Made by a program: the position numbers and the translations under genes. A stretch of 40,433 nucleotides of DNA from positions 1 through 40,433 of the forward strand of contig NIVC01004617.1 in the NCBI GenBank assembly GCA_002269645.1. Reading direction: 5' to 3'. Source of the DNA: Macrostomum lignano. Its lineage: Eukaryota. The notes beneath the pieces were generated by a model. That model had not been told where the DNA came from, made no database searches, and saw only the letters and a list, made by a program, of their open reading frames with translations. This document shows positions 24,474 to 40,202 of the stretch, one piece after another (the first letter of the stretch is position 1; every line of letters begins with the position of its first letter).

Positions 24474-24666
24474 CCTCGGAGCCGGAGGTGGTGTACCCGC
24501 AGGGCAACCAGATCAGCATCCGGCAGGGCAAGACTCTCATCGTCAAGTGCCGGGCCCGCGGCAAGCCCAACCCCAAGATTCTCTGGATCAAGAACGGCCG
24601 CAACCTGGTGCTGACCAGCAACGTCCGCATCGAGAGGGAGGAGGTCAACAGCGAAGACGAGACGCA
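24474..24666 (+). CDS. Neuregulin-like protein: Ig I-set domain, first exon
   Basis: Acceptor CCGTTCCCGCAG| (phase 1). Encodes EPEVVYPQGNQISIRQGKTLIVKCRARGKPNPKILWIKNGRNL, containing the B-strand Cys, G-x-P-x-P and C-strand Trp. Donor CA|GTGAGT, phase 2. Confidence 0.9.
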
Positions 24667-24739
24667 GTGAGTCACTCCTTCTCCCTCTAAAGCTATCTTT
24701 CAATCTCCGTCCTCTATATCAATCCGATTTTTAGTCTCC

Positions 24740-25270
24740 CCTAGATACCTCTCAATCTCCCTCATGGGCCTCTTAATCTCCCCCATCTACCTCTTAATCT
24801 ACCTAATATGCCTCTCAATCTCTTTCATGTACCTCTCGATCTCCCCTATCTGCCTATCGATCTCCCCATCTGCTTTTCAATCTCCTGAATTCACCTCTCA
24901 ATCTTCCCAATCTACCTCTCAATATCTCCCTTATCTACCTTTCAATCTCCCCTATCTACCTCTCAGTCTGCTCTTTGTACCTCTCCGTCTCCCCTATCTA
25001 CCTCAATCTCCTCTATCTACCTCTGAATCTCCTCTGTCTACCTCTCAATATCCCCATCACCTCTCAAATCTCCCCTATCTACCTCTCAATCTCCCCTATC
25101 TACCTCTCAATCTGCTCTATCTACCTCTTAATCTCTTCCTTATCTACTTTTCAAACTCTCCTAGCTACCTTTCAATCTCCCCTAGCTACCTCTCAGTCTC
25201 GCTTATCTACCTTTCAATCTCTCCCCCATCTACATCTTAATCTCTCCCTTATCTACCTTCCGATTTTCCT
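24740..25270 (+). repeat. Degenerate pyrimidine-rich minisatellite (~22-bp period)
   Basis: Recurrent TCTACCTCTCAATCTCCCCTA. Confidence 0.8.
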
Positions 25271-25886
25271 CTATCTCTTCTATCGATTTCCTCTCAATCC
25301 ACTCCCCCTGCTTCCCCTGCTCCCCCTGTCTACTCCCCAGCTGAACAGATCAGCCGCTCCATCTCACCTCTCCCGCCAGGCCGGCAGCTGCTGTCTGTGT
25401 CATAAGCGTGACTTGAGATTAACCTGACTAATAACCTCACTCCCGTGCCAGCATCTGCTTTTCTTGGTTACACAAACTTCAACTTGAATTCCTTTTGAAT
25501 AGGGAGATCCATTTTCGCCTACCTTGGAGTCCTCCATCTCGCGGAGGCTGAACCCGGCGTGAACTGCAAACCCTTGTCTGTTTTGCATTTTCCTCCCTAT
25601 CTCACTTCTCTGCAGGGCATCGATTGATTTCTTACCGCCCCACAAAAAGGTGTGGAGCTCTCAAGATGCTTTTAAAGATGAAGAACAATAGGGCACAAGA
25701 TGCTGGGGCGAATGAAGGGTTTGGGACTGCTGCGGCGGCCTGTCTTGCCCGGCTTCAAGAAGCAGAAAGACGCATATTGATGCTTTGTGTGGCAACCTGT
25801 GTCGGGCCCAAAACACTGAGAGGAATGGGAGAGAGGGAGAGAAGCAGACAGTTGTGTAGCTTGAGAGGGAAAGTGAGTGAGAAAGG

Positions 25887-26854
25887 GAGTGAGTGAGTGA
25901 GTGAGTGAGTGAGTGAGTGAGTGAGTAAGTGAGTGAGTGAGTGAGTGAGTGAGTAAGTGAGTGAGTGAGTGAGTGAGTGAGTGAGTAAGTGAGTGAGTGA
26001 GTGAGTGAGTAAGTGAGTGAGTGAGTGAGTGAGTGAGTGAGTGAGTGAGTGAGTGAGTGAGTGAGTGAGTGAGTGAGTGAGTGAGTAAGTGAGTGAGTGA
26101 GTGAGTGAGTGAGTGAGTGAGTGAGTGAGTGAGTGAGTGAGTGAGTGAGTGAGTGAGTGAGTGAGTGAGTGAGTGAGTGAGTGAGTGAGTGAGCTCATAA
26201 GTGAGTGAGTGAGTGAGTGAGTGAGTGAGTGAGTGAGTGAGTGAGTGAGTGAGTGAGTGAGTGAGTGAGTGAGTGAGTGAGTGAGTGAGTGAGTGAGTGA
26301 GTGAGTGAGTGAGTGAGTGAGTGAGCTCATAAGTGAGTGAGTGAGTGAGTGAGTGAGTGAGTGAGTGAGTGAGTGAGTGAGTGAGTGAGCTCATGAGTGA
26401 GTGAGTGAGTGAGCTCATGAGTGAGTGAGTGAGTGAGCTCATGAGTGAGTGAGTGAGTGAGTGAGTGAGTGAGTGAGTGAGTGAGTGAGTGAGCTCATGA
26501 GTGAGTGAGCTTATGAGTGAGTGAGTGAGTGAGTGAGTGAGTGAGTGAGTGAGCGAGTGAGTGAGTGAGTGAGTGAGTGAGCTCATGAGTGAGTGAGTGA
26601 GTGAGTGAGTGAGTGAGCTCATGAGTGAGTGAGTGAGTGAGTGAGTGAGTGAGTGAGTGAGTGAGTGAGTGAGTGAGTGAGTGAGTGAGTGAGCTCATGA
26701 GTGAGTGAGTGAGTGAGTGAGTGAGTGAGTGAGTGAGTGAGTGAGTGAGTGAGTGAGTGAGTGAGCTCATGAGTGAGTGAGTGAGTGAGTGAGTGAGTGA
26801 GTGAGTGAGTGAGTGAGTGAGTGAGTGAGTGAGTGAGTGAGTGAGTGAGTGAGT
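25887..26854 (+). repeat. (GAGT)n microsatellite with GTAAGT and GAGCTCAT variants
   Basis: ~240 tetramer copies. Confidence 0.98.
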
Positions 26855-27672
26855 GGGGACTCAGGTGCACTAGTGGAGCCTCACATTCACAGCCCAGTAT
26901 GTTTGACAACCGGGGCGCCGCCGAGTCGGGGGATGAGGGCTGGCGAGTCTGGCTACAGTCTAGAAAATTAATTCGATGTTAGCAACCGCGGCGCCGCCCC
27001 GCCACCCCTCCGGACTCGAAGCCACAGCCCAGGGCGGCCTTTTGCACCTTCATGGCTGGCCGGCTGTAATCAAGAGGGCCGAGAGTGTTAATAATGCGGC
27101 CTTGTCCGCCCCTGCCTGCTCACTTGCCCGCCACCCCGCACGCCTCAGTTAGCCGCTGGTCTGCTCATCTCCCTTATCTTCTCCACACGCTCAACTCGCT
27201 GGCTTAAGGATGGGAGAGGGGGAAGGGCGATGGGAAATCTCCGTCAAAACCAAATCCTCAACCCCCCACTACTACTACTGGCGTAATCTTCGACAATAAT
27301 TGGGAGGGCCAGTCAGTGTGGCGTCCCCAACCCGCCCGCCTCCCCGAGCTCCCGAGATGCCTTTTTTGCTTTTCCCCGCTGCCTCTGCGTGATTAAATGA
27401 TTCCCATAGAAAGACGCAGTTTCCGGCTGTGCGGTTGGCCTCTTCAAGATCCCGCACTCAAGATGATGGGATCCAATATCTGTGTCCATTCATCTGACTC
27501 GCTGTCAACTTGTCATTGATTGCATTATCATGCTTTCATCATCACTTTCGGAGGCTAGGAGATTATTTTCTCTGCTAGTGGGTTCAAAAGATTTCACTTC
27601 ACAATATCTGTGGACAGTTTCAGAGCCTGCTTTGTTTCCTACTTTTCTGTGTGAGACTGTGAGACTGCTCAG

Positions 27673-38607: not shown

Positions 38608-38664
38608 GTGAGCGTCTTGAGATTGAGAGATTAGCTTGTTGGACAGAGTGATGAAAGAGCTGTG

Positions 38665-39510
38665 CGAGAGTGATAAGAGAGCGATGAAGAGAGAGAGCAA
38701 TGGGAGAGAGTGATAAGAGAGCGATGGGAGAGAGTGATAAGAGAGCGATGGAGAGAGTGATAAGAGAGCGATGGGAAGAGAGTGATAAGAGAGCGATGGG
38801 AGAGAGTGATAAGAGAGCGGTGGGAGAGAGTGATAAGAGAGCGGTGGGAGAGAGTGATAAGAGAGCGTTGGAGAGAGTGATAAGAGAGCGATAGAGAGAG
38901 TAATAATAGAGCGATGGGAGAGAGCAATGGAGAGAGTGATAAGAGAGCGATGGGAGAGAGTGATAAGAGAGCGATGGGAGAGAGTGATAAGAGAGCGATG
39001 GGAGAGAGTGATAAGAGAGCGGTGGGAGAGTGATAAGAGAGCGACGGAAGAGTGATAAGAGAGCGATGGGAGAGAGTGATAAGAGAGCGGTGGGAGAGAG
39101 TGATAAGATCGATGGAGAGAGTAATAAGAGAGTGATGGAGAGAGCAATGAGAAGAGTGATAGAGAGGCGATGGGAGAGAGTGATAAGAGAGCGGTGGGAG
39201 AAAGTGATAAGAGAGCAATGGAGAGAGTGATAAAGAGCAATGGGAGAGAGTGATAAGAGAGGCGGTGGGAGAGATGATAAGAGAGCGGTGGAGAGAGTGA
39301 TAAGAGAGCGGTTGGAGAGAGTGATAAGAGAGCGATAGGAAGAGTAATAATAGAGCGATGGGAGAGAGCAATGGAGAGAGTGATAAGAGAGCAATGGGAA
39401 GAGTGATAAGAGAGCAATGGAGAGAGTGATAAGAGAGCATGGGAGAGAGTGATAAGAGAGCGGTGGGAGAGAGTGATAAGAGAGCAATGGGAGAGAGTGA
39501 TAAGAGAGTG
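38665..39510 (+). repeat. 24-bp purine-rich minisatellite (~35 copies)
   Basis: Unit GAGAGAGTGATAAGAGAGCG(A/G)TGG. Confidence 0.95.
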
Positions 39511-39535
39511 ATTTCACATGTTGATTAGCACACAG

Positions 39536-39654
39536 CAAACACACTCTCCTTCCAGACTGCTTTCACCGAACGACAGAATTCTGACTGTGACCGGCATTGG
39601 GCTGCTGCTCACCATGCTGCTGCTGATTCTGCTCATATCCTGGTACCTGTCCAG
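39536..39654 (+). CDS. Neuregulin-like protein: transmembrane exon
   Basis: Acceptor GCACACAG| at 39535/39536 gives the required phase 0: QTHSPSRLLSPNDRILTVTGIGLLLTMLLLILLISWYLS. RILTVTGI resembles NRG1 RVLTITGI (recalled). Donor AG|GTAGGT, phase 2. The stronger-looking acceptor at 39555 is out of phase with the previous exon. Confidence 0.82.
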
Positions 39655-40141
39655 GTAGGTGCTTCTTACTAGTAAGTGTCACCAAAAATCATTAGTTACC
39701 TCATAATTATCATTACATCCTGAATACTTCGATATAACTAGCAGTACCTTCAACTCCATGGACACCCCTATGCTATGAAAAACACTGAACTACACATTAG
39801 CAGCTAACTCTCAAAACTTGAAACGGCTGCTTTGTTTAAATAAAAACAATGTTTGCGTTGTCATTTGAATAACTTAAAAACGGCTCTGAATTCCACTTTG
39901 CTGCTTTTAGAAGCAATTGTTGACAAAAAGTATTGAGAAGGTTGTTGAAACTGTAGCTTGATTTCATCATCAAATTAACTATTCAAAAGCCGTTGCAACG
40001 TAGAGAATTTCTACCTTGTTTTGACAACAAGCATTTTTCGCACTAACTACTCTAATCTACTTTTAGTAGGTGATTTTGCGCATTAGCATTTTTCTTTGAA
40101 AATTCTCCACTTCGCTTCGCAATCGCCTTCTCAATCTACAG

Positions 40142-40202
40142 GCAGCGAAGACGCGATTTCGATTTCTGGCGACGGAGCAAGCGGAGAATGAGCGATCGCC
40201 AG
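40142..40202 (+). CDS. Neuregulin-like protein: first cytoplasmic exon (gene continues beyond the window)
   Basis: Acceptor TCTACAG|G completes AGG. Encodes RQRRRDFDFWRRSKRRMSDRQ, a basic stop-transfer segment. Donor CAG|GTGAGG. Confidence 0.75.

Follow-up and report, generated by a model that had tools for sequence, protein, structure and literature searches.

A candidate neuregulin-type EGF receptor ligand gene in the flatworm Macrostomum lignano

A contig from the genome of Macrostomum lignano (NIVC01004617.1, 40,433 nt, analyzed over its whole length and referred to here as the window) contains the 5′ two-thirds of a gene with the hallmarks of an ErbB ligand. On balance, we favor by a modest degree the reading that this gene encodes the precursor of a neuregulin (NRG)-type EGFR ligand, orthologous to polyclad NRG-2, and that the indels that break its frame are assembly errors. 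The predicted precursor would be a single-pass membrane protein comprising an N-terminal region, an Ig I-set domain, a Pro/Ser/Thr (P/S/T)-rich spacer, an EGF module, a stalk, a transmembrane (TM) helix and a basic tail. A preliminary description of the locus had proposed a neuregulin-type ligand, and this is supported by colinear alignment from the Ig domain to the tail, by matches of the stalk, TM and tail region, and by an intron between Cys4 and Cys5 of the EGF module.

Exon structure

Seven small forward-strand exons (A–G, 61–193 nt) are spread over 16 kb, and all are present at the coordinates first proposed, with pyrimidine-rich AG acceptors and GT-type donors (Table 1). Their satellite setting was also confirmed, since tandem repeats account for ~65% of 24474–40202 (summed rows, TRF score of at least 200). 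The exon set was nevertheless incomplete, as the ATG lies in a further exon upstream of this interval. This exon 1 is preceded by an in-frame TGA (23680–82, 18 nt 5′ of the ATG), closes with one base of a codon at a GTTTGT donor, and lacks a signal-peptide-like hydrophobic stretch (maximum 19-residue hydropathy of 0.72).

Splice phases are consistent from exon A through to exon E, and from F to G, as originally stated, but the single frameshift thought to interrupt them proved to be five indels relative to a database protein (see below). The 3′ end of exon C is firm, while its 5′ end is uncertain: in-frame AG acceptors open to the donor lie at 33075, 33090, 33141, 33174 and 33192. A donor at 40203 indicates that the gene runs on past the end of the window (40433).

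Table 1 Exons of the gene and single-base differences from A0A1I8GW14.
Feature	Position	Strand	Length (nt)	Content	Acceptor	Donor
Exon 1	23698–23890	+		ATG and 64-residue N-terminal region (MKPELAPIQ...SLLE)		
Exon A	24474–24666	+	193	N-terminal half of Ig I-set, SEPEVVYPQGNQISIRQGKTLIVKCRARGKPNPKILWIKNG...EDETQ	ttcccgcag	gtgagt
Exon B	28416–28531	+	116	C-terminal half of Ig, HQLVSTLRISRILERDSGNYTCRAENNHGSIQKWVFVD	ccccaacag	gtaagt
Exon C	33090–33203	+	114	Spacer, AHQFLTRSRSPTRTADSVQPQEPKPSPPAVTPLPAEWR, 41% P/S/T		gtgagt
Exon D	34410–34488	+	79	EGF Cys1–Cys4, KPSCPAFYCLNNGTCSRQSVSSPPAC	ttttcccag	gtaagt
Exon E	38516–38607	+	92	EGF Cys5–Cys6 and juxtamembrane stalk	tttccccaag	gtgagc
Exon F	39556–39654	+	99	End of stalk and TM helix, DRILTVTGIGLLLTMLLLILLISWYLS	ctccttccag	gtaggt
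Exon G	40142–40202	+	61	Basic stop-transfer and start of cytoplasmic tail, RQRRRDFDFWRRSKRRMSDRQ	caatctacag	gtgagg
Indel	near 38526			+1		
Indel	near 38554			−1		
Indel pair	near 38571/38583			−1/+1		
Indel	near 39570			−1		

The sole close database protein is M. lignano A0A1I8GW14, an independent gene model built from exons A, B, D, E and F together with a portion of exon C, taking for the latter an acceptor at 33152 in another frame. Thus, the gene described as hidden does have its exons scattered in satellite, but a partial model exists in UniProt, titled just "Ig-like domain-containing protein" and not named as a neuregulin. Residues agree at 61/65 positions in exon 1 (tblastn), 65/65 in exon A, 22/22 in the PAFYC...PPAC segment of exon D and 26/27 in exon F. 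Exon B, in phase with exon A, is the same from HQLV on, and no substitution occurs in 104 Ig residues. The substitutions found (three residues of exon 1, one Q/R difference within the EGF module and one L/V difference within the TM helix) look real and indicate that the window carries a different allele or paralogue.

Domain architecture

The proposed domain order is supported. Joined exons A and B match Pfam I-set (E = 1.6e-15) and Ig_3 (3.2e-16), and the P/S/T-rich spacer that follows is probably glycosylated. In the window, exons D and E encode Cys1 to Cys5 of the EGF module in phase, with Cys6 in the +1 frame only, and a composite of the window and A0A1I8GW14 gives C-x4-C-x5-C-x10-C-x-C-x8-C. 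The Pfam EGF score is 14.7 bits, under the 21.5 cut-off. The module is split by an intron, with the exon D donor (34488) two bases past the Cys4 codon and the exon E acceptor (38516) one base before the Cys5 codon. An Arg precedes Cys6 (GARC) both in A0A1I8GW14 and, in the +1 frame, in the window. From Cys6, a stalk of 28 residues with two extra cysteines leads to the TM helix, which starts DRILTVTGI and has a hydropathy of 2.68 over 19 residues; a basic tail comes next (exon G, in phase with exon F; Lys/Arg at 10/21 residues). The TM helix is in frame in A0A1I8GW14, whereas in the window its phase differs by one base from that of exon E. The Neuregulin cytoplasmic family (Pfam PF02158) gave no match on the encoded part, which has only 21 cytoplasmic residues.

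An intron between Cys4 and Cys5, an EGF module near the TM helix and an Arg before Cys6 are criteria for ErbB ligands (Stein & Staros 2006, PMC1618406), and the gene has all three; the preliminary description had correctly named the intron as typical of these ligands.

Frame breaks in exons E and F

In a frameshift-aware alignment to A0A1I8GW14, all five single-base indels fall within exons E (four) and F (one). The four in exon E cancel in pairs. The canonical PYWGARCER (38527–38553) is found in the +1 frame only. Read in phase, exon E gives NCSRAVLGRQVRTVDTGPFRTSAKTCRGKVL, against the canonical NCSQPYWGARCER of A0A1I8GW14. Exon F is one G short (CGAACG-ACAG near 39570), and the in-phase continuation from exon E is therefore DCFHRTTEF and then a stop, nine codons into exon F and ahead of the TM helix. 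The strict in-phase reading of the window, NCSRAVLGRQVRTVDTGPFRTSAKTCRGKVLDCFHRTTEF followed by the stop, loses Cys6 of the EGF module. With five one-base edits, exons E and F match A0A1I8GW14 at 62/64 residues. Four of the indels are length changes in G or A runs of one to four bases and the fifth falls in a CGCGCG repeat. A0A1I8GW14 has a frame defect of its own in exon D, which removes Cys1 and leaves Cys2–Cys6 in frame. Since the defects of the two copies lie at different sites, both look error-laden.

Comparison with known ErbB ligands

We compared the encoded protein with published ligands, the sequences of which were copied by typing from the OCR-read supplement of PMC4914847 and contain small errors. 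By BLASTP, the whole protein was most similar to NRG-2 of the polyclad Prostheceraeus vittatus (4e-28, 34% identity over 241 residues), followed by NRGs of Owenia (8e-19) and Crassostrea (4e-16), Vein (3e-11) and human NRG1 (8e-10); NRGs published earlier from M. lignano (1.5e-6) and Schmidtea (1.7e-6) trailed these. The protein is colinear from Ig domain to tail with at least 10 published NRG-type ligands, and these still come top when the Ig domain is removed from the query. With the stalk, TM and tail as query, the top six matches were all NRG-type, among them P. vittatus NRG-2 (1e-11), amphioxus NRG (1e-6), Lineus NRG (1e-4), human NRG1 (1e-3) and Owenia NRG (2e-3), while every EGF-type ligand had E > 0.1. 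The expectation that database searches would point to neuregulins was borne out by BLASTP, but when the EGF–TM part was searched by HMMER against all 1.84 billion representatives, it matched multi-EGF-repeat proteins only and no NRG. A profile built from only two flatworm sequences, run against 5.8 billion proteins, gave one named match besides A0A1I8GW14, a fish pro-neuregulin-2 (E = 7.9e-5).

The EGF module is less discriminating. Its top 14 matches among PDB sequences were without exception ErbB ligands or mimics, and Notch EGF repeats ranked lower. Betacellulin scored 2.7e-5 and EGF/TGF-alpha 3e-5 to 1e-3, with Spitz also among the best. Heregulin/NRG1 reached 0.12–0.42. In BLAST searches with the module alone, NRG-type and EGF-type ligands were intermixed. 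Hence the module is not closer to NRG than to EGFR-specific ligands, as betacellulin and TGF-alpha score as well as NRGs.

P. vittatus NRG-2 (PMC4914847 supplement) has the same order of parts at similar spacing. Both proteins have a short N-terminus without a signal peptide, one Ig domain ending KKWVF, one EGF module and two extra stalk cysteines, and then D-R-x-L-T-x-x-G-I-G-L, continuing as ...ISW(Y/F)..RQRR(R/K)D..(F/W)RR(S/K)K. The NRG-2 spacer resembles exon C in length and Ser/Thr/Pro composition, ARQRRKDWRVFRRKSKS of NRG-2 aligns with exon G, and NRG-2 is also the top match for the TM segment alone. Differences are that P. vittatus belongs to another flatworm order, that NRG-2 is known from a transcript alone, without intron positions, that EGF identity is low (different loop residues despite a shared Cys1–Cys2 spacing of 4), and that nothing in the window corresponds to the ~330-residue cytoplasmic tail of NRG-2.

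Vertebrate Ig-neuregulins (pro-NRG1 type I and pro-NRG2) share the layout of Ig domain, glycosylated spacer, EGF module, short stalk, TM helix and basic tail, with 22–27% identity over 88–96% of the query (BLASTP; overall ~23%), and their EGF module is likewise split by a Cys4/Cys5 intron (PMC1618406). The TM start of human NRG1 reads KRVLTITGI and contains the RVLTITGI to which RILTVTGI had been likened. NRG1 lacks the two stalk cysteines, and the EGF module is no nearer to it than to betacellulin.

Drosophila Vein also places an Ig I-set domain before a single ligand-type EGF module (E = 3e-11 over Ig and EGF, BLASTP), and vein genes have the Cys4/Cys5 splice site (PMC1618406). Vein stops shortly past the EGF module, whereas the window gene has a TM helix and a cytoplasmic tail. 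A Vein-type secreted ligand does not fit the TM and basic-tail exons downstream with matching splice phases. That the protein is transmembrane and more vertebrate-like than Vein is supported by these exons, but the frame is broken as assembled and such invertebrate pro-neuregulins have been known since Barberan et al. (2016, PMC4914847), where NRG-type ligands (Ig, EGF and TM) are reported from most bilaterians including flatworms, and where the direct flatworm counterpart of this gene was already catalogued.

Alternative readings

Could the resemblance be one of common domains, in an unrelated Ig and EGF single-pass protein such as an adhesion molecule that is no EGFR ligand? Few extracellular modules are commoner than Ig and EGF, and both the sub-threshold Pfam EGF score and the exhaustive HMMER search fit this idea. 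It is opposed by the EGF module, which occurs singly, has the cysteine spacing of a ligand, an Arg before Cys6 and a Cys4/Cys5 intron, and lies 28 residues from the TM helix, by the ErbB ligands that head the PDB matches, and by the colinearity with NRG-type ligands. In addition, the stalk, TM and tail constitute no common domain, yet match NRG-type ligands specifically. We regard this explanation as very improbable. Equally improbable, in our estimate, is an EGF/TGF-alpha/Spitz-type ligand that gained its Ig domain independently, with no homology to the NRG/Vein group. Its appeal lies in the EGF module, which scores betacellulin, TGF-alpha and amphioxus EGF-4 as high as NRGs; betacellulin shares ...Y-x-GARCERVD with it, and betacellulin, TGF-alpha, EGF and Spitz, its best matches, are also membrane-anchored precursors with EGF near the TM helix. 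However, EGF-type ligands lack an Ig domain, and the similarity does not extend to their stalk and TM regions. The TM-start motif, a pattern defined post hoc, and the basic tail are common to NRG-type ligands, with the motif present in seven published ones and in 0/15 EGF-type ligands examined, and the sole named match of the Ig domain in the unbiased profile search is NRG2.

A more serious contender, to which we give roughly one chance in three, keeps the gene family but takes the window copy for a truly frameshifted, decaying duplicate of an intact paralogue elsewhere in the genome. Some chromosomes are duplicated in M. lignano DV1, and 180 Mb of the published genome lie in duplicated blocks of at least 95% identity (PMC5730564). 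The product of such a copy, as in the strict in-phase reading, would amount at best to a secreted, truncated Ig protein whose EGF module is crippled. The substitutions relative to A0A1I8GW14 are in keeping with this view, as is the clustering of all five indels within the 191 nt that make up exons E and F. Against decay, the 64 codons that contain the five indels show about two amino-acid changes and the 104 Ig codons show none, a ratio unlike a natural mutation spectrum. Their placement in base runs (4/5) and a CG repeat (1/5) is the signature of long-read consensus error and favors assembly error over a decayed copy, and A0A1I8GW14, the other copy, has its separate frame defect. PacBio data underlie the published M. 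lignano assemblies, which are redundant and rich in repeats (PMC5730564). Judged from these sequence features, the five indels are most likely consensus errors of long-read assembly rather than real mutations.

Proposed function and place among flatworm neuregulins

Taking the gene as an NRG-type ligand, we propose that the precursor begins with a short N-terminal stretch lacking a cleavable signal peptide, which vertebrate Ig-NRG1 is likewise not known to carry. The EGF module, of the receptor-binding type, would be displayed at the cell surface or freed by cleavage of the stalk. It may then activate one or more of the eight EGF receptors reported for M. lignano (PMC4914847), and a role in stem-cell and regeneration control is probable by analogy with other flatworms and acoels. 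Binding to two flatworm EGF receptors, EmER1 and EmER2, has been demonstrated experimentally for EmNRG of Echinococcus (PMC12963305).

EmNRG and the NRGs of M. lignano, Schmidtea and Schistosoma combine Ig and EGF, mostly with a TM helix, and are classed as NRG-type. Sequence comparison separates the present gene from the one NRG described for M. lignano in 2016 and marks it as a second, so far unnamed Macrostomum NRG-type paralogue, because these other flatworm NRGs are far more distant and have a long N-terminal domain that the window gene lacks. The DRxLTxxGI motif, expected to be kept in relatives and indeed conserved in the seven ligands above, is absent from the TM start of the other flatworm NRGs compared.

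Exon structure and encoded protein

Seven small exons (A–G) lie between 24474 and 40202 on the forward strand, with the sizes (61–193 nt) and end points given in the preliminary description. They have canonical splice signals, sit in short unique islands between repeat blocks, and are in consistent codon phase from A through E and, separately, from F to G. The acceptor of exon C is ambiguous (33075, 33090, 33141, 33174 or 33192), and the gene continues past the window end at 40433, beyond exon G. The seven exons are real, but the preliminary description missed a further exon upstream of exon A. 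Located by tblastn against the window, this exon is identical at 61 of 65 residues to the Macrostomum lignano protein A0A1I8GW14, opens at the first ATG after an in-frame TGA, and joins exon A by one spliced base.

Exons of the neuregulin-type gene, single-base edits that bring exons E and F into agreement with A0A1I8GW14, and other loci in the window.
Feature	Position	Strand	Length or change
Upstream exon	23698-23892	+	
Exon A	24474-24666	+	193 nt
Exon B	28416-28531	+	116 nt
Exon C	33090-33203	+	114 nt
Exon D	34410-34488	+	79 nt
Exon E	38516-38607	+	92 nt
Exon F	39556-39654	+	99 nt
Exon G	40142-40202	+	61 nt
Edit 1	near 38526		CGCGCG run, one base fewer
Edit 2	near 38554		GG to GGG
Edit 3	near 38571		AA to AAA
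Edit 4	near 38583		AAAA to AAA
Edit 5	near 39570		G to GG
Rejected EGF exon	36236-36333	+	
Neighbour gene	1754-5617	+	
P/S/Q-rich ORF	18319-18795	+	158 aa

An initial candidate for the exon carrying the second EGF half offers a good, correctly phased CAG acceptor and mimics the start of the EGF Cys5 loop. It was rejected, as it reads Cys4-x5-Cys5 and lacks Cys6, and A0A1I8GW14 leaves it unused and places the true exon at 38516.

The joined exons read as an Ig domain (SEPEVVYPQGNQISIRQGKTLIVKCRARGKPNPKILWIKNG...NYTCRAENNHGSIQKWVFVD; Pfam I-set E = 1.6e-15, Ig_3 3.2e-16), a spacer of 39 residues (41% P/S/T), an EGF module with KPSCPAFYCLNNGTCSRQSVSSPPAC from Cys1 to Cys4, and, after a stalk, a transmembrane (TM) segment (DRILTVTGIGLLLTMLLLILLISWYLS; mean hydropathy 2.68 over 19 residues) and a tail (RQRRRDFDFWRRSKRRMSDRQ) in which 10 of 21 residues are K/R. 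This is the order of Ig I-set, P/S/T spacer, EGF, TM and basic tail that had been read from the sequence. No signal peptide was found at the N-terminus, where hydropathy reaches at most 0.72; vertebrate Ig-NRG1 is not known to have one. For comparisons with other ligands we used a 316-residue composite of window sequence (upstream exon, exons A–D, TM, exon G) in which exon E and the first codons of exon F follow the UniProt reading.

ErbB-ligand features of the EGF module

In the composite, the cysteines of the EGF module are spaced C-x4-C-x5-C-x10-C-x-C-x8-C, and Gly and Arg precede Cys6. Among all PDB chains, the top 14 distinct matches to the module are ErbB ligands or their mimics: betacellulin (E = 2.7e-5), an EGF/TGF-alpha chimera (3.4e-5) and Spitz (3e-3), with an ant EGF-mimic toxin, EGF and TGF-alpha among the other top matches. 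Notch EGF repeats rank below these, and heregulin and NRG1 score weakly (0.12–0.42). ErbB ligands are characterized by an intron separating Cys4 from Cys5, an EGF module near the TM and, usually, an Arg before Cys6 (Stein & Staros 2006, PMC1618406). All three features are seen here: the intron noted at the outset as an ErbB-ligand trait is present at 34488|38516, and in the composite Cys6 is 28 residues from the TM and preceded by Arg.

Neuregulin-type assignment

Neuregulin (NRG)-type ligands are defined as having an EGF module, an Ig I-set domain and a TM, and are found in most bilaterian phyla (Barberan et al. 2016, PMC4914847). We compared the composite by BLASTP to the ligands in the supplement of that paper, an OCR'd PDF. 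The alignments span the Ig domain to the tail, with NRG-2 of the polyclad Prostheceraeus vittatus the closest (E = 4e-28, 34% identity over 241 residues), followed by NRG of Owenia (8e-19), Crassostrea (4e-16) and Schistosoma (3e-12), Vein (3e-11), amphioxus NRG (6e-10) and human NRG1 (8e-10). The search was repeated with sub-regions to exclude the contribution of the common Ig domain. With the EGF-to-tail segment, NRG-type ligands score best (53.5, 49.7, 47 and 46 bits; human NRG1 36), and the top EGF-type ligand is TGF-alpha at 33 bits. The EGF module alone does not discriminate between the two types. For stalk, TM and tail alone the best six matches are all NRG-type (1e-11 to 2e-2) and every EGF-type ligand has E > 0.1. 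We ranked pairwise sub-region scores rather than building a tree, since the roughly 45 residues of the EGF module that can be aligned, in sequences taken from OCR, would leave a tree unresolved.

A multiple alignment, in which a few letters of human NRG1 were corrected, reveals a common cassette at the start of the TM. The window gene has DRILTVTGI, compared to KRVLTITGI in human NRG1, so the vertebrate-like motif reported earlier is indeed there, with DRTLTYVGI in polyclad NRG-2, DRVITIMGI in Lineus, DRVITISAI in Owenia, DR-LTIIGI in Crassostrea and KRVLAITGI in amphioxus. The end of the TM is marked in every aligned cassette by an aromatic residue together with a basic stretch (R/K-Q/N-R-R-K). 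The TM-start pattern, written post hoc, occurs in seven published NRG-type ligands and in 0 of 15 EGF-type ligands.

A profile built from just two sequences, those of the window protein and of polyclad NRG-2, gave a single named match among 5.8 billion proteins besides A0A1I8GW14: a fish pro-neuregulin-2, via its Ig domain (E = 7.9e-5). Including human NRG1 gave hundreds of vertebrate NRG1/2 matches; this profile is circular and was therefore used for coverage figures only. HMMER with the EGF-TM part of A0A1I8GW14 against 1.84 billion representatives returned multi-EGF-repeat proteins only, because many weak repeats add up, and is uninformative on family.

Thus, the Ig-to-tail alignments, the sub-region scores, the shared cassette and the fish pro-neuregulin-2 match support the central interpretation of the preliminary description, that the gene would encode a membrane-anchored neuregulin-type ErbB ligand. 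We propose a single-pass membrane precursor with an extracellular Ig-spacer-EGF part. Its EGF module may signal in a juxtacrine manner from the cell surface or, alternatively, after cleavage in the 28-residue stalk, and the predicted ligand would bind at least one of the eight EGFRs of M. lignano.

Frame breaks and the UniProt model

The joined peptide had a single match among 5.8 billion proteins, A0A1I8GW14 from M. lignano (274 residues), which UniProt names merely "Ig-like domain-containing protein". In tblastn onto the window, exon A is identical to it at 65/65 residues, exon B from HQLV onward, the stretch PAFYC...PPAC in exon D at 22/22 and the TM at 26/27. These identities assign the window to M. 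lignano, or else to a species very near it. The window copy represents a different allele, paralogue or assembly from that behind the UniProt model. A0A1I8GW14 reads exon C in another frame from another acceptor (GAEALAASRDAPASGVAKAILPAFYC; window 33152-34430) and consequently lacks EGF Cys1, which the window keeps in an intact KPSCPAFYC. It also lacks the P/S/T spacer and the basic tail, ends where the TM exon ends, and looks like a gene model forced around a one-base indel.

The second half of the EGF module, NCSQPYWGARCERVDTGPFRNFSETCRGKVLDCFHRTDRILTVTGI in A0A1I8GW14, is located in exon E. In phase, this exon reads NCSRAVLGRQVRTVDTGPFRTSAKTCRGKVL and lacks Cys6, with PYWGARCER in the +1 frame; exon F read on in phase gives DCFHRTTEF and a stop ahead of the TM. 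Once five single-base edits are applied, exons E and F equal A0A1I8GW14 at 62 of 64 residues. The phase is broken between E and F, and the one frameshift reported in the preliminary description understates the damage, being the net effect of five one-base indels. Inspection of the sequence found no alternative acceptor or donor that restores the E-to-F phase without an indel.

We regard consensus errors as the somewhat likelier source of these breaks, the sequence being duplicated, flanked by repeats and hard to polish. The short runs at which the window copy is defective are not those affected in A0A1I8GW14, there are hardly any amino-acid substitutions (0 in 104 Ig residues), and four of the five indels alter the length of a run. 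The same three observations argue against a genuinely decayed window copy, to which we give an appreciable but minority chance. Further DNA copies with which to check the indels were not on record, either in exact-product look-ups of A0A1I8GW14, P0161 (a 442-residue metaclust ORF) and two window ORFs, or in metagenomes scanned with the peptide of exon A. The published M. lignano genome is PacBio-based, more than half repetitive, with 15% simple or tandem repeat and 180 Mb of duplicated blocks at least 95% identical (PMC5730564). The locus carries a practical warning for this satellite-rich genome, in which kilobases of tandem repeat separate the short exons and one-base frame errors are many: the protein is given wrongly by the assembly and by the public gene model alike.

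P0161 ends, within its C-terminal 50 residues, in RSSEPEPVYPERNNIDLTEGRTLIVKCRARGKPNPKIIWMKNSRNLVLGS, which is 73% identical to exon A, and the roughly 390 residues before these resemble non-coding read-through. P0161 may thus stem from yet another paralogue, or from the orthologue in another macrostomid.

A possible second flatworm neuregulin lineage

The 2016 survey reported one NRG-like ligand, one EGF-like ligand and eight EGFRs in M. lignano (PMC4914847). That NRG is a different and much more distant protein (BLASTP 1.5e-6 against the composite), with a long N-terminal domain and without the DRxLTxxGI motif. The counterpart of the window gene is instead polyclad NRG-2; the two have in common KKWVF at the Ig end, two extra stalk cysteines, an ISW(Y/F)..RQRR(R/K)D tail and an N-terminus without a signal peptide. 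We found no published description of a second Macrostomum NRG-type gene in the literature.

An NRG-type ligand of a tapeworm, likewise laid out as Ig-EGF-TM, has been shown to bind tapeworm EGF receptors (PMC12963305), and work cited in that paper ties nrg ligands to the control of stem cells in planarians and acoels. The proposal of a transmembrane invertebrate pro-neuregulin more vertebrate-like than Vein is supported here, but it is established knowledge, given the tapeworm ligand and the presence of NRG-type ligands in most bilaterians (PMC4914847). What is new is the second NRG-type paralogue in Macrostomum and its exon structure.

We tentatively suggest, while thinking it rather less than an even prospect, that the window gene and polyclad NRG-2 represent an old second flatworm NRG lineage, retained by Macrostomorpha and Polycladida, which branch early, and in planarians and parasitic flatworms either lost or no longer recognizable through divergence. 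It would be the sole flatworm NRG to keep the pan-bilaterian stalk/TM cassette ([D/K]R-V/I-L-T-I/V-x-G-I ... basic tail) common to annelid, mollusc, nemertean, amphioxus and human NRG1. If so, membrane-proximal processing or back-signalling by the NRG1 TM region would predate the protostome-deuterostome split, and its function could be studied in a transgenic, regenerating flatworm. Transgenesis works in M. lignano, the flatworm model in this respect, and in planarians, acoels and tapeworms stem cells and regeneration are under the control of EGFR signalling. As the second M. lignano NRG-type ligand, and the one best preserving the vertebrate-like TM region, the locus is of use for annotation and for the choice of RNAi or reporter targets; the picture of EGFR-ligand evolution is unchanged.

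Repeats and other loci in the window

The window is extremely rich in micro- and minisatellites, with 44 Tandem Repeats Finder rows at a score of at least 200, which sum to about 65% of 24474-40202. Blocks include 10076-11540, 13822-15464, 22506-23129, 28957-31870 and 36355-37644. The many unrelated units are 4–65 bp long, and there are tetranucleotide arrays of (TATC)n, (TAGA)n, (CAGA)n twice and (AGTG)n. The two strands differ strongly in composition (GC skew +0.98 at 30-32 kb), and the tandem repeats create long spurious ORFs on both strands; all reverse-strand ORFs in the gene region are translations of repeats. There were no matches in Rfam and tRNA scans of the full window, nor in Pfam for the other non-repeat ORFs at 8-24 kb. 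Between satellite blocks upstream of the NRG-type gene, the P/S/Q-rich, non-repeat ORF (…PSQSVPSKHPSAPSPAPSQQ…PPPPPPQGVSRYAIELEVNYVLGECLP), without a Pfam match, is a candidate coding region only.

The upstream neighbour gene encodes ankyrin repeats in ORF 1754-2308 (Pfam Ank_2 1.8e-15) and a MYND zinc finger that seems to be divided between two exons, CEVCDQ...CRHCAGC at 3932-4108 and YCGSRCQRLNWPVHKPEC at 5078-5617 (zf-MYND 7e-5 for the latter). Pfam gave no match for its two middle exon ORFs (2897-3148 and 3932-4108). The layout resembles that of ANKMY2, and the introns are filled with minisatellites (a 51-mer at 2303-2837, a 29-mer at 3217-3756 and a 218-mer at 4632-5049).
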